Assembly (NCBI GenBank): GCA_907165135.1
Contig: OU015567.1
Coordinates: 4,650,001 to 4,714,000 of the forward strand
Origin: Oikopleura dioica
Lineage: Eukaryota; Animalia; Chordata
DNA length: 64,000 bases
Reading direction: 5' to 3'
Under the pieces are notes generated by a model, which made no database searches, was not told where the DNA came from, and was given only the letters and a program-made list of their open reading frames with translations. Shown piece after piece: positions 1-6,245 of this stretch (its first letter is position 1; the number at the start of each line of letters is the position of its first letter). The position numbers and the translations under genes are program-made.

Positions 1-700
1 GACCTCGAGACGGCAGTTAGAGTTCAAGCATTTGATCCTTTCGTTTTCACTGATAAATTTCCTTACACGGAAATCGAGTTTGAAATTCATCTTGCCTCTG
101 GTAAATTGGGATGAAAAAATTACAAAGACAATTATGAATTTAAGATTTCAGAAACAACCAAGAAGATGTTCGATTACATGAATTTCCTTCACATACCAAT
201 ATTATTAAAAATTATGTGAACATTGAACTGTTTCATCCATTGGACGTCGAGCGCTTGGATTGTCTTGGATGGATTACAATTATGGAAAAAGGAGAGACTA
301 ATTTACGGAAACTTCTGAAGGACGGTAATTTATCGATTGAAAAGAGACGCGAAATTGCACAAGGAGTAAGATCAGCGATGGACTATTTGTACGTCAATGG
401 CACCGATCACCTCGACCTTAAAATGCAAAATGTTGTTATGGTTAATGGGATACCCAAACTTGTTGATTTCGGGCTGGTGGAAAGTCGCCACAAAAAAATT
501 GGTTATCGCAAGATGGGCTGCACTCGGCGTAGATCAAAATACAGATTTTCCCCCTCTATTTGTAATCATTTGCAATTTTGACAAATATGATCGTTTTTTA
601 GTCGCTGGGACTCCCGGATTTTCATCTCAATGTCAGCTTACGAGTGGAAAAGGTTTCAATTTGGGAACAAATATATTTAGGGTTTTTCACGGAACGGCGC
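1..700 (+). CDS. Protein kinase domain (5'-partial, spliced); divergent Ser/Thr kinase-like
   Basis: Exons read HTNII...WITIMEKGETNLRKLL, catalytic loop HLDLKMQN, DFG and AGTPGF; short introns at about 100-150 and 540-600. The APE motif is not conserved. Confidence 0.85.
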
Positions 701-1373
701 GGCCCGCTCTGAGGTCCATCCACGAATATTAAAAGTCTTCTATTGAAGCGAAATTTATAATTCAAAAAATGAAACCGACTAATTCAAGGGAATAGATTCA
801 TAATATCGCATTAGTTTTCCATTCGAATGCCAGAATTCGCTGTGAGACGGTTTTTCTTACTAAATTTCGATTTTTCAATCTGAGTACATCAAAATACACT
901 CTCTATTTTCAAATATGTAAGATATAAGATGTTTAATTTTTAGCTCACAAAATTTGGGATTTCGGAAACATTCGGAAGGTGTTCAAATCGTCAGATAAGT
1001 GAGTGAAAGTGACTGCGCGCTAGTGCTTTACGCCGCTGCGCGGGACGCCCAAAAAACATTAGCGCGCGCCATAATCCCAGCGGGTGGTTTCTCTGACCTA
1101 ATATCCGAAATCTGATGCGAATTACACCGGGTGATTTGCATAAACAATTTCCCGGAAGTGTCAAGCTTAGTATTTGAGATGAATTAGACGGCTTTATATC
1201 ACTCGGGACAACAAAACTGATGAGATCCTTTTTTATCTTCCTTATCATTATTGCACCACCACCAGGTCAGAATTTGATAATTATTTTCACATATTTGAAA
1301 TCAGCGGCTCAAGTAACACTTATTTAGAAATTTTAAGGCCCATTGAATGATATACCACTTTCCGTGAAAAACC

Positions 1374-3143
1374 CTAAATATATTTATTCATATTTTTTGC
1401 GAGTGGAATACTGGGTGGACGCTTCTTTATAAACCTCTTGACAAGGAAGAAAAAAGAGAAATAAATAAACTCATCTCGGTAATATCCAGTATGCAACCTA
1501 TAATTATGATTATTAAAAGGAATGCAAGGGAACTCCTATCAGAGTTTTTGAGTACAATCGGGACAGCTTCTTCGAAGACACTCCGCTTTTATCTTTGGAA
1601 AACTCGAGCGATCAATTCGCCCTCAATGACGAAGTAATGACCCAGTCTTATCAAATATCTACTTTGAAGCAGAATTTAACCAAATTCGTCAAACAGAATG
1701 TCCAAAATTTGAGCAAAAATGTTCGGGACCAAAAGCTAAGCAATCTCTGCGTTTCGTTCTCTGTCACCAATCTTATTCGATATGCGATGAAAAATGATCT
1801 AGGCTTCTTCGATCTCAATCAATCGCACAAATTTGAAAATATCATGTCTTCTCTTAACTTGGTTATCTATCCAAGAAGTATGGCTGGATTGAATTTGAAT
1901 CCGAGTCAACGGGAGCTAGGAGACCAACTGTCAGATATTGAAGTTATTCTTAAACGTGTCTGCATGGGAACTTATCTGATGCCGAGCGGTTGGCATATTA
2001 TCAGGATGCTTGGTCATTTTACCGATCCCCGCCCAGTTGAATCAGACTGTATTTGCAAAACAGGTTTCTTTATTAACCCTGTCCGCATATCGACCTAGGT
2101 GTAGGTTAATTTACTTTTAAACGAAATTATACTTTTGGAAAAACGACATTTCTTCACAGTTGACATTTGAAATTTGATCGTGTCCAGGAGATAGCTCAGC
2201 CTTTAATCTTTCCATTCATGTCCTTTCGAAATTTTTATCACGACTGAAAGACCCTCAAAAGCCCGACCTACGCGTAGGTCGATATGCGGGCAGGGGTGAC
2301 AAATTTTTCATGCGGGCAGGGATTAAAAGATAAAATTATTCTACGGTTTTAGTTTATCTTCATCATGATTATCAATTTCACAGACCTTTGACTGTAACTG
2401 GAGTTATCTTGAGAAAAAATGAGACTTATCCGATATTCCACCAGATGACGCTCGATTCTATTCAAAACGGATGTTTTATCCTTAAGAACAGTCAATCGAG
2501 TGACTCGATGATAAGAATAAGAAGGACAGATCCATTTTACGTTCATGAAGAAGAGTACTTTCGACTTTGTCACCAGAACGAAGGAGCCTTTTATTGGCAA
2601 GACAATTCCATGGTTGAAGTCATAAGTTTTAATCAAATGGACACTGATAAATGGTATCTTCTTCCTCAAGCCTTCTCCCTAGAACTCAGACCAAGACGAA
2701 TTTCCTCGTTGTTTTGGATAGCAGCGGTACCATCGGCAAAATTATCCCGTACATTAACCTGGTGGAAATACTTCAAATTTGTTCTCTTCAATGATGTTCC
2801 CGATTTTATGTTGGGAGTCTTAGAATCATGGAAACTTATAAAAGAAGACCCTCTTGCTCGCAAAAGCAATAATTTCTTTGAAATCGTTAGAAACTTCGAT
2901 AATTTCAAAAATAGGGTGACAAAAGAGACACAGATGGGACTGTCAGATGCAGAGACATTCCTTGCCTTTAACGAAAAAATAAACGCTCGTTATGGATATA
3001 TGGGACCGCCTTATCGAAAATTTTACAAAAAACCAAGAGTTGACTGTCGAGTACGAAATGGTGTTCTGACCATAGGACATTATCCGCTTCAAAAAGAACA
3101 AGAAGTAGTGAGACCCATTTTTCGACTCGTCTTGAATAACTGA
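1374..3143 (+). CDS. Continuation of the kinase gene: kinase C-lobe-like segment, then papain-like (clan CA) cysteine-protease-like domain and C-terminal region
   Basis: IFCEWNTGWTLLYKPL exon joins ORF 1595-2098 in frame via GT-AG intron 1479-1519. VRDQKLSNLCVSFS (1721-1762) resembles papain VxDQGxCGSCWAFS; HQMTLDSIQNGCFILKNSQ (2439-2495) resembles the H...WIVKNSW half. Stop at 3143. Confidence 0.65.
2070..2330. mobile_element. Small inverted-repeat (MITE-like) insert in an intron
   Basis: 2070-2106 is an imperfect reverse complement of 2266-2302; partial third arm at about 2309-2330; includes palindrome CGACCTACGCGTAGGTCG. Confidence 0.55.
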
Positions 3144-3543
3144 AATCTGCCGAGTGCAGTTATTTTGTGATTTGAAATCACTGATTTCCGGACCCATAAA
3201 AGGCTTTTCGATAATCCATATCAATAAAAGAATATTTATTCATTTTTCTCATCTGAAAAAGTGTCTTCTGAATAAATGTCGACTTACTGCTCAGTTACAT
3301 TGGCTCGGTGAAGTTGTGGGCGACCGCAGCGTAAAATCAGCAAAATTTAGCAAATTTTCTCATCACGAAAATGGTGTATTGTGTGTGATGGCCGCAATTT
3401 CGCGTCGCCTAATTAATCCATCAGCCTCCCTTACCTTCCGCATTTCAAGGCATTTGCATAGCTGTACATTTTCACGTCAAACGCATAAGATTTTTTCTTC
3501 CTGATTCTAGAGCAACACATTCTAGAGATACTAAATATTTTCT

Positions 3544-6245
3544 ATGAAGACCTTTATATGGATGCTTGGCGCGATAGGAACGAGTTCAGATCATTTATGA
3601 AATTATTTTTCTATAATTCAAAAAATACGACAAATTTTTATTCAACTGAAAATTTTTGAAAGATAAGCTTACTCAAAACTCTTTATCAGGCGTTTCAAGC
3701 TTCAATCTCGACCCTACTCCACCCAACAACTACACCACCTCCACCAAGGGTTGTCCCTGTTTCTTCGATCAGAAGAAAACCACTGAATGCCCTTGCTGCG
3801 TCGATGAAAATTCCTGCCCATGCTCCGTAAGTGCCAATGCCTCCTCTTCCTAGATGGATTATTTTTCAAATTCAGTGGCCTTACGACGACAGATGTGGAG
3901 ATTGCAATACCGGACACGGTTGCCTTCCGGAGCCGATCAATATTGATACGCTTTCCGATCGCGGTTGCACTTGTCAGGATGACGATATTTTCGGGCTAGA
4001 GAAGGGGAGCTGCGCTTGTTGTACACCCTACAGTCATTCCGGGAAGCACATTTGTCCCTGCGCATATCCTTATCATGTAAGCCTGAAGCTCGAAAATAAC
4101 CTCCTAAATCTCTATCTTAGCATATGTGTGTCGAGTGTAGTGAAGCCCAAAGCTGCGGAAACCACATCGAAGCCGCTCTGTACCAAGAACTGTACCCAAA
4201 CTACTTCAAACCAGTCCAAGCATCGGAATCACTAATGCTCTCTGACGTGAGATCCGATCGTGAAATCGCGCCGGGGTCGAACATCTGCCACGAAATTCCA
4301 CACAAGATCGAGAACGGTTTTACAATTTGCGACAAAATCCCAAAAAAGGGAAAAGCATGCGTGTTCTTCTGCGATGATGGTTACCAAAGAGTGGGAAATT
4401 ACAGGAACGAGTTTTTGATGTAAAGACTTTTTGAGACTTCTTCAGCTTTTATTAATCTTTTCTGATAGTTTTATCATCGCCATAAACTTGATAATAGGGC
4501 GGAGTGTGTGTGCTCGGAGCTGGGATGTAACTGGAATGATGAGCCGGGCTATGAGATGCCGTATTGCGTCAAGGATGCCTGTGCAGATGAGCCTTGTCAG
4601 AATGGAGGCACTTGCAAAGCTGATGAAGGAAATGTTTGTATAGAAGCATTGATATTTTGACTATTGTAACTTACAATTTGTAAGTATCAAAGAAAATCAG
4701 TTGAACAACATGAAAAAGATGGATTTACTTGCGATTGTAAGCCGGGATACCTTGGAACTCTCTGCGAAGTCGAACTGATGGCGGATTTTGTCGGCGGTCT
4801 ATTCGGCGATGATATCATGGAAGAACCAATGAGCTCACCAACCGACGCTCCTGAGTTCCGTGTCGTTTCTCCTCAGACCACGACTACTGCTGTAAGAGAA
4901 TATGACGAAGAGGAAGAGGAGGAGGAAGAGGAAGATGTTCAATCGACTTCTGTTGGGCGATTCGCGAGACGAAAAAAATTCGGAAAGAATAAAGATCGAA
5001 ATACGTGCCCGCCCTTGGACGGCGGCGAAAATGGAGGACTCAGGTGCACAAAAGGCTTTAAAAAATCTTCTACTTGTCATTTGGTCTGCGATGACGGTTT
5101 TACTCCGTCAAATACGAAGTTCTCTAAGCCCAGATGCATCTGCAATTCCAATAGGAAAGAGCGCGAAAACCATTTCTCTTCAATAATTGTTATGATAATT
5201 TTCAAGCTCGAAGAAAGATGCTCCTGGGACCGGTCAAACTCGTTCAAGCTGGCAAAATGCTCCGCTTGGCCAAAACCAGAAGGCGAAAACGTGAACGACG
5301 CGATTGTCAACAGCGATAATAGTCAACGAATGTTCGTTCAACAAACGAAATGCCCTCCTCTGACAAAACCGGCGAATGGAAATGTTCGTTGCACAGAAGT
5401 CAACAAAGATGGTAATGAAGCATGTCAAGGCAGCTTTATAAAGAAATTTAAGGGTCTCGATGTCAGTTTTTGTGCAAATCTGGATTCAATGTTTCGAAAG
5501 CTAGATTTGCCCGCTGCGCATGTGTTGATGGCAAATGCATGTGGAACAAGGTTCGTTTTGGCTCTAGAAAAAGGCGTGAAGAAATTTTTTAGGAAGAATT
5601 TTACACAGAACCACTTTGCGAGGACAAAGATGAATGTGCTCTTGGAAATCATAATTGCGCCGCGGACATGCATTGTGTCAACAAACCTGGATCATTTTTG
5701 TGAGTTTTCATGATAAAAGAAAGTCATTTCTTGACAATTTTTCAAGTGCGTGGAATCTGATTCCCAAGTCCTCCGACGATGCGATTCAAATCCTTGCGGA
5801 CGAGCTGGAATTTGCTCGATAACTGCCGCGGGCTACAGATGCGAGTGCAAAGATGGATTCAGATTTGCTCAAGGAACATGTGTCGATGTTGACGAATGCG
5901 AAGTTGGCATTGATAAGTGTTTTTCAAAAGCGATGTGTGAGAACTTCGAAGGTGGCTATTCGTGCAGATGCCCATCCGGCTATGGTGATGGTTTGACCGA
6001 GTGCTTAGGGTCAAAGTAAGCGACTTTTCCAAAATTATCCACCGAAAATGAACTTCAGGGACGATTTGACTTGCACTCAAAAACGCAGTTTCCGAACAAA
6101 TCCCCTCCCAAACTACGTTGCTCCCAACGCTTGCTGCCTTTCCACCCCGTTCAACACCGATTTGAACTGCTGCTGCGAAGGAAAATTGCACCCAATTGAT
6201 GGCTGCCCCTGCATGGCCGCCGATTATTCTGACATTCAATATTAA
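3544..6245 (+). CDS. Secreted Cys-rich multidomain protein: novel Cys-rich N-terminus, sushi/CCP-like, EGF and Ca-binding EGF domains, galaxin-like C-terminal repeat
   Basis: MKTFIWMLGAIG signal-like start; CPCF..CPCC..CPC clusters; sushi-like CPPL..NG..C..C...C.DGF; EGF CQNGGTC..C.CKPGYLGTLC; DVDECEVGIDKC; C-terminal CCLSTPFNTDLNCCCEGKLH; multiple short introns. Confidence 0.85.

Follow-up and report, generated by a model that had tools for sequence, protein, structure and literature searches.

The peptidases that resemble most closely the domain considered here all belong to clan CA. The papain family C1 includes cathepsin B, Der p 1/Der f 1, caricain, and xylellain. The C39 peptidases, such as those of ComA and PCAT1, are bacterial domains of about 130–150 residues fused to ABC transporters, and AvrPphB (C58), UfSP, ZUFSP, and ATG4 are cytosolic clan CA enzymes of narrow specificity, none of them fused to a kinase; AvrPphB cleaves kinases in their activation segment. 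Here, we describe a locus at the beginning of a 64,000-nucleotide stretch of the genome of the chordate Oikopleura dioica (contig OU015567.1, G000:C5:4650001-4714000, called the window hereafter; gene coordinates are window positions unless labelled otherwise), in which a kinase domain precedes a papain-fold domain. The locus is very probably one copy of an O. dioica family that combines a kinase with a clan CA fold, this particular copy having been hit by a hAT-like transposon.

Compared with the C1 peptidases, the family shows an identity of 8–16%, is fused behind a kinase, and has no match over the cut-off to PF00112 or PF03051; from a reading of the sequences, a signal peptide, a propeptide, and the C1 disulphide pattern are not evident. 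In contrast to the C39 domains, the domain is found in an animal, behind a kinase, and measures ~230 residues with a larger helical lobe. Its structural likeness to AvrPphB, UfSP, ZUFSP, and ATG4 is weak and accompanied by no sequence relation, AvrPphB being the top Foldseek row (E 0.03).

Kinase and papain-fold domains in one family

Search queries were individual exons, paralogues consisting of one open reading frame (ORF), or database proteins. Own-genome matches numbered 128 for the N-terminal exon, 129 for the kinase exon, 132 for the exon carrying the Gln and Cys (Q-C exon), and 95 for the exon carrying the His and Asn (H-N exon). There are about 100–130 family loci in this 64-Mb genome (OKI2018_I69 assembly, 64.28 Mb in 19 scaffolds; published values, 64.3 Mb and 19 scaffolds, PMC8008620). 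Of the 40 best Q-C exons, 39 were preceded on the same strand by a kinase exon at a distance of 0.6–1.5 kb, the pairs being matched by eye between two own-genome match lists. In two paralogues, one uninterrupted ORF (L030:1613-3517, 635 residues; L031:1771-3672, 634 residues) spans the N-terminus, the kinase, the linker, and the Q-C half of the papain-fold domain, and database proteins carry PF00069 together with the papain-fold domain.

A preliminary description of this DNA had proposed a kinase and a papain-fold protease in one chain, with Gln, Cys, His, and Asn in the order of papain, and had called for a genome-wide count of loci carrying both parts. The count, now made, gave ~130 copies of each part with 39/40 paired, and the proposed chain is corroborated by the single-ORF paralogues, by the database proteins bearing PF00069, and by the fold match given below. 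At the level of sequence comparison, these results indicate that the fusion is real in the family as a whole.

When 1.84 billion representatives were searched exhaustively with a HMMER profile, 202 proteins were found; the named ones that were looked up all came from O. dioica, and the rest were metagenome fragments. The family is seen only in O. dioica and in unnamed marine metagenome fragments. A literature search retrieved no paper on a single chain containing both a kinase and a papain-fold peptidase, nor on the family, in agreement with the earlier suggestion of a lineage-expanded family without a name. Both domain folds are known, but the search found no description of their combination in one chain, and the peptidase part goes unrecognised by the family models. 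For a 64-Mb chordate genome, more than 100 genes are a noticeable part of the gene complement, so that their function is a real gap both for Oikopleura biology and for the clan CA catalogue.

Far more divergent kinase and papain-fold proteins were also encountered on marine metagenome contigs of the ENA (P0136 and its cluster mates). In these proteins, PKWIGGLGYRP replaces YPRSLAGLNLNP, and the Q..C and H positions are kept; they presumably come from another planktonic animal.

Fold and proposed activity of the papain-like domain

The fold was assigned from the database protein P0002 (253 residues), which is 50% and 39% identical to the two protease exons of the window. The AlphaFold2 (AF2) model of P0002, made from an 81-row alignment, reached a predicted local distance difference test value (pLDDT) of 82.6 and a predicted template modelling score (pTM) of 0.77; its first half is helical and its second half beta. 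Gln26 is followed by Cys32, the first residue of helix 32–47, and His163 (strand 161–171) and Asn179 (strand 174–179) are located on one hairpin. Their spacing of 16 residues is that of papain. In the P0002 model as in the residues of the window, the succession of Gln, Cys, His, and Asn, with the Cys at a helix N-terminus and the His on a beta strand, is that of clan CA. In the alignment of 81 family members, where the denominator differs per position, the Gln and the Cys were each present in 71 of 72 aligned members, the His in 27 of 31, and the Asn in 27 of 33, which exceeds what chance would give.

When the P0002 model was compared by VIA-align with 48,161 chains, the top 50 were all clan CA cysteine peptidases, and the model has the two-lobe fold of that clan. 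The rows included xylellain (C1, 9.6), cathepsin B (C1, 9.1), the ComA peptidase domain (C39, 9.0), Der f 1 (C1, 9.0), staphopain C (C47, 8.1), UfSP (C78, 7.8), and ATG4A (C54, 7.2). The aligned ranges start at model residue 26 against residue 23 of cathepsin B and residue 11 of ComA, both of which we take to be the oxyanion Gln. Foldseek against the PDB gave no row at E <= 0.001; the weak lists were also enriched in clan CA.

Several sequence results weigh against this assignment. No Pfam peptidase model exceeded its cut-off in any member scanned, searches of PDB sequences with the family profile and with single sequences found nothing, and hhalign against the genome's own cathepsin exons returned an uninformative probability of 0.3 from shallow alignments. 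A word search with a cathepsin-like ORF, run to deepen the cathepsin alignment, yielded two close matches only. Genome searches pointed the same way for individual families: PF00112 found the conventional cathepsin loci and 0 of the ~130 family copies, and PF03051 found nothing. The C39 models PF03412 and PF13529 were absent from the Pfam scans of members, the likeness to C39 being structural only. Exon 4 gave a sub-threshold match to Peptidase_C1_2 (PF03051; 15.7 bits against a cut-off of 22), over the part of the profile that holds the Gln and Cys of that family, and such weak matches occurred in only 2 of the 81 members. Since no curated peptidase model was reached, the family would be a very divergent one of clan CA that Pfam does not recognise, and it is neither C1 nor C39 by definition. 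Judging from the model, the domain would most fittingly be regarded as a new clan CA family, and a very divergent one. Of the earlier proposal of a papain-fold protease, the clan CA fold and the Q-C-H-N set are upheld by AF2 and VIA-align, but membership of Peptidase C1 has to be dropped, neither PF00112 nor PF03051 being reached.

Two members, L031 (G000:C4:3229770-3231913) and P0074, carry a Ser in place of the nucleophile (FLSVPFSV and NLSVPISI, respectively), the motif being otherwise intact; these could be either natural Cys-to-Ser variants or copies without activity. A viral origin of the domain was also considered. Foldseek against viral models gave a single weak giant-virus protein (E 5e-4, template modelling score 0.3–0.4), which was insufficient.

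An intact member is expected to be a single cytosolic protein made of a conserved N-terminal region of ~130 residues, a very divergent non-RD eukaryotic protein-kinase domain with an Arg at the beta3 Lys position, a linker, and a papain-fold domain of ~230 residues. In the latter, the Gln of the oxyanion site is kept, as are the nucleophilic Cys, with which a helix begins, and, 16 residues apart on a beta hairpin, the His and the Asn. The sequences and the model show the architecture, the fold class, the retention of the four residues, and the expansion. Beyond this, the domain may be a working cysteine (iso)peptidase that cleaves cytosolic substrates or its own chain, and the kinase-like part may regulate it or dock its substrates. 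Phosphorylation gating of the protease and a signalling or defence role, both suggested in the preliminary description, were not supported by the present results. A more specific alternative, possible but on the whole unlikely, is that the peptidase-like domain is a deubiquitinase or an isopeptidase for ubiquitin-like proteins, rather than a general endopeptidase; the family would then function in protein quality control or in signalling of the ubiquitin type, with the kinase-like part selecting or marking the targets. Returning to a cytosolic (iso)peptidase in general, a wider picture can be drawn, to which we give a rather low probability: the family would consist of lineage-specific chordate switch enzymes of the cytosol, in which the kinase-like module controls, or is cut by, the attached clan CA (iso)peptidase, and whose more than 100 fast-diverging copies with swappable tails would take part in innate-immune or proteostasis surveillance. 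The loss of many standard immune genes has been reported for O. dioica.

Gene model of this copy and insertion of a hAT-like element

The features of the locus are listed in Table 1; the exon junctions given are those that fit the phase and agree with paralogues and database proteins. The ATG of exon 1 is located upstream of the window (L001:1063, G000:C5:4649563). When the transposon is left out, the exons add up to 2457 bases, i.e., 819 codons in a single frame, and exon 3 is coding over 602–677 and 1385–1478. The junction between exons 4 and 5 reads ...CICKT-V-YLHHDYQFHRPLTVTG, which agrees with VFLNENFVFTRPLTVTG in the family.

Table 1. Exons, introns, and inserted elements of the kinase and papain-fold gene copy at the start of the window.
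Feature	Window position	Strand	Evidence
Exon 1, end: conserved N-terminal region, glycine-rich loop SEGGEALV, beta3 AVRV (13–24), Arg (19–21) at the catalytic Lys position	1..100	+	128 paralogous matches, alignment
Intron 1, 44 nt, gtaaat..tttaag	101..144	+	Phase fits only the acceptor at 144; junction HLAS-D-FRNN like HLLS-DFQ of P0074
Exon 2, kinase core: HLDLKMQN 408–431 (non-RD), DFG 465–473, RRRSKYR activation segment	145..561	+	Pfam Pkinase, 129 paralogous matches, alignment
Intron 2, 40 nt, gtaatc..ttttag	562..601	+	Junction ...SPSI-F-AGTPGF like ...EDAL-F-AGTPGF of P0007
Exon 3, left part AGTPGFSSQCQLTSGKGFNLGTNIF	602..677	+	Ends in the left 8-bp target-site duplication AATATATT (670–677)
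hAT-like non-autonomous DNA transposon, 699 bp, TAGGGTTTTTCACGG...CCGTGAAAAACCCTA	678..1376	.	Inverted repeat, dispersed copies, target-site duplications
Right target-site duplication (1377–1384) and exon 3, right part IHIFCEWNTGWTLLYKPLDKEEKREINKLIS, kinase alphaF region	1377..1478	+	Joined directly to the left part in paralogues
Intron 3, 41 nt, GT..AG, phase 0 on both sides	1479..1519	+	Sequence
Exon 4, linker and helical half of the papain-fold domain: Gln (codon 1730–1732), Cys (codon 1748–1750) VRDQKLSNLCVSFS, YPRSMAGLNLNP, GW.IIR	1520..2063	+	132 paralogous matches
Intron 4, 289 nt, GT..AG, phase 1 plus 2	2064..2352	+	Usual intron position of the family; lengthened by an inverted-repeat element like a miniature inverted-repeat transposable element (MITE)
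Exon 5, core, beta-sheet half of the papain-fold domain: His (codon 2439–2441) FHQMTLDSIQNGCFILKNS, Asn (codon 2487–2489), WYLLPQAFS	2353..2699	+	95 paralogous matches, this part only
Exon 5, tail, 147 codons and TGA stop, orphan extension	2700..3143	+	Matched only by the near-identical upstream copy

The HLDLKMQN and DFG motifs and the residues Gln 1730, Cys 1748, His 2439, and Asn 2487 are all found where the preliminary description had placed them, and its in-frame intron at 1479–1519 is a GT..AG intron with phase 0 at both ends. Boundaries in the exon map needed correction. Intron 2 is at 562–601. The last exon, previously thought to start at about 2388, starts at 2353 after the intron at 2064–2352 (phase 1 plus 2), and the 'tttcag' at 146–151 is coding (D-F-R) as in P0074, exon 2 starting at 145.

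An inverted-repeat search showed that the element at 678–1376 is bounded by short repeats starting with TAG, and four further full-length copies of it were found in the genome at 94–95% identity. Target-site duplications of 8 bp flanked all three element copies inspected (AATATATT at 670–677 and 1377–1384 of the window, AATATGTG in L050, and ACTATATG in L051). The ORF list of the window contained neither an ORF longer than 85 residues nor a transposase ORF within the element. The 8-bp target-site duplication, the short terminal inverted repeats starting with TAG, the lack of a transposase ORF, and the dispersed near-identical copies are features shared with the non-autonomous DNA transposons of the hAT superfamily, and the sequence at 678–1376 is taken as a non-autonomous hAT-type element, an assignment based on duplication length and repeat ends only; no autonomous partner was identified, no search aimed at it having been made. 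Its middle (window 982–1186, i.e., 303–507 of the 695-base query window:680-1374) was matched at 74–84% identity by ~30 other loci without the element ends; this suggests that the element is composite or contains part of another repeat.

The insertion point is uninterrupted in paralogues, NIF|IHIFCEW of the window corresponding to NIFVYILSDW in L030 and YFLYLFCDW in P0007. The insertion adds 707 bases and in-frame stops to exon 3: as assembled, the kinase frame runs into a TAA (730–732) within the element, and a TGA at 1365 is found in the next frame. This TGA had been reported previously as an in-frame stop; it is present, but it falls within the right inverted repeat of the element. Likewise, the suspicion that this copy may be damaged was justified, the cause being a transposon within the kinase exon. 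The stretch of about 730–1370, across which no splice path had been traced, is accounted for by the 699-bp element.

All other exons are still open, with 819 codons without the element, which indicates that the insertion is recent. For the element together with one duplication, none of the nine registers had a usable intron end (no GT-AG, GC-AG, or any ..AG end). The transposon being in the alphaF-coding exon without exact splice removal, its recent arrival has most likely ended the production of the full kinase–protease chain by this copy, which is probably disabled on the basis of its sequence. The locus would thus represent a recently transposon-hit, probably non-functional member of a family that is new to clan CA and has a novel architecture. 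As such, it dates a recent hit of a gene by a hAT-like element.

It is unlikely, but less so than the remaining alternatives discussed below, that this copy is still functional, either because the transposon is removed from the RNA or because a transcript starting downstream gives a protease-only protein. Part of the evidence does speak against a disabled gene. A cryptic pair, GT(682)..AG(1403), the only in-frame GT..AG pair for removing the element, could excise it and change IHIFCE into R, so that some product is possible, and its acceptor is pyrimidine-rich. In addition, the other exons are open and in phase, the frame of the orphan tail is open as well, and the insertion is young, as the element copies differ by only 5–6%. 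However, the absence of a usable register was noted above, and the cryptic pair has a weak donor, GTTTTT, besides costing the protein its conserved alphaF motif FCEW. Moreover, none of the four runs inspected yielded RNA reads from this copy, which leaves the silence of the gene and its splice model alike unproven. These runs, three bulk and one single-cell, consisted of raw reads examined over the whole gene; they bear the same species label and possibly come from another cryptic O. dioica lineage. No indexed RNA run contained the gene stretch. Only partial reads were recovered from the four runs, 90–95% alike, over the two most conserved motifs, each continuing into unlike sequence, and without joints at the predicted introns. 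Given this similarity and the unlike flanks, these reads are attributed to transcripts of paralogues rather than of this copy. Some family members are transcribed.

A second, MITE-like element occupies about 2069–2330 in intron 4 of the putatively disabled gene; it has an inverted repeat and more than 25 dispersed copies (85–92% identity), and it is harmless.

A second whole-gene copy, including both transposons and the tail, was observed at G000:C5:4606392-4612532, ~42.1 kb upstream of window 1–4641. Over at least 6.1 kb there were 0 mismatches, and the only differences were 1-bp indels, of which three fall in the L002 stretch, covering the upstream region and the first exons, and another lies farther on in the gene. 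Compared position by position, the two copies first go out of register near window 1456, next to an A-run of exon 3. The N-terminal exon of this duplicate reads through a TGA, and its first 18 residues are lost. Its extent was determined by blastn on loci, a 16-kb DNA self-search having failed to show it. The likely explanations are an assembly artefact and a very recent duplication.

Kinase-like part, C-terminal tail, and downstream sequence

The kinase part was recognised by Pfam Pkinase (PF00069) at 216–578 with 43.2 bits against a cut-off of 31.7 (4e-11), and the L030 ORF scored 44.9 bits. This over-cut-off match, the non-RD H-x-D-x-K-x-x-N loop, and the DFG motif are shared with non-RD or atypical eukaryotic protein kinases and with pseudokinases. 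The family differs from the non-RD and atypical kinases in the Arg that replaces the beta3 Lys (AVRV, window 13–24; 5 of 5 aligned members) and, according to the alignment, in a glycine-rich loop cut down to GGEA and in the lack of an APE motif. The best PDB kinase match was CDK9, with an E-value of only 7e-6, and for this reason no kinase group can be assigned. The Arg in place of the beta3 Lys suggests that the kinase part may not be a working kinase.

This departure from the catalytic consensus, together with the loss of the Cys in some paralogues (L031 and P0074, which have Ser), would fit a family in which the papain-like domain is a catalytically dead scaffold whose four residues are kept for structure. 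We consider this improbable, since Gln, Cys, His, and Asn are near-invariant across copies that are only 40–50% identical, as is seen in active sites. There is even less room for two neighbouring genes, an option left by the preliminary description: the kinase frame does end at the TAA within the element, with the TGA at 1365 in the next frame, and some database models, such as P0002, are peptidase-only, but the break is due to the dated insertion, paralogues read through as one ORF, the exon phases fit throughout, and order, strand, and spacing are the same in 39/40 loci.

Typical members of the kinase and papain-fold family end a few residues past WYLLPQAYS.L, whereas this copy continues for 147 codons; it illustrates that members can carry orphan C-terminal tails. 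Apart from the upstream copy in the own-genome search, the tail (2700–3140) was matched by nothing in Pfam, PDB sequences, a word search of database proteins, or the ESM Atlas. Its frame is free of stops (0, against 11 and 9 for the other two; chance about 3e-5), and the guanine-plus-cytosine content by codon position is like that of the other exons; the tail is thus probably coding. A single-sequence AF2 model of it was uninformative (pLDDT 41). Variable tails seem to be a trait of the family, as far as can be judged from the sequences compared.

In P0167 (Oidioi.mRNA.OKI2018_I69.chr2.g8366, near G000:C5:13309963-13310849), the papain-fold domain is followed by a J-domain-like stretch, YYAILGV...KLAKEKHPDKNP, and by a long tail, which is either a real domain swap or the result of a merged gene model.

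Just downstream of the gene, at window 3656–4650, open frames rich in cysteine motifs were observed (for example CPCFFDQKKTTECPCCVDENSCPCS and CACCTPYSHSGKHICPC); they may belong to a gene for a cysteine-rich secreted or metal-binding protein.

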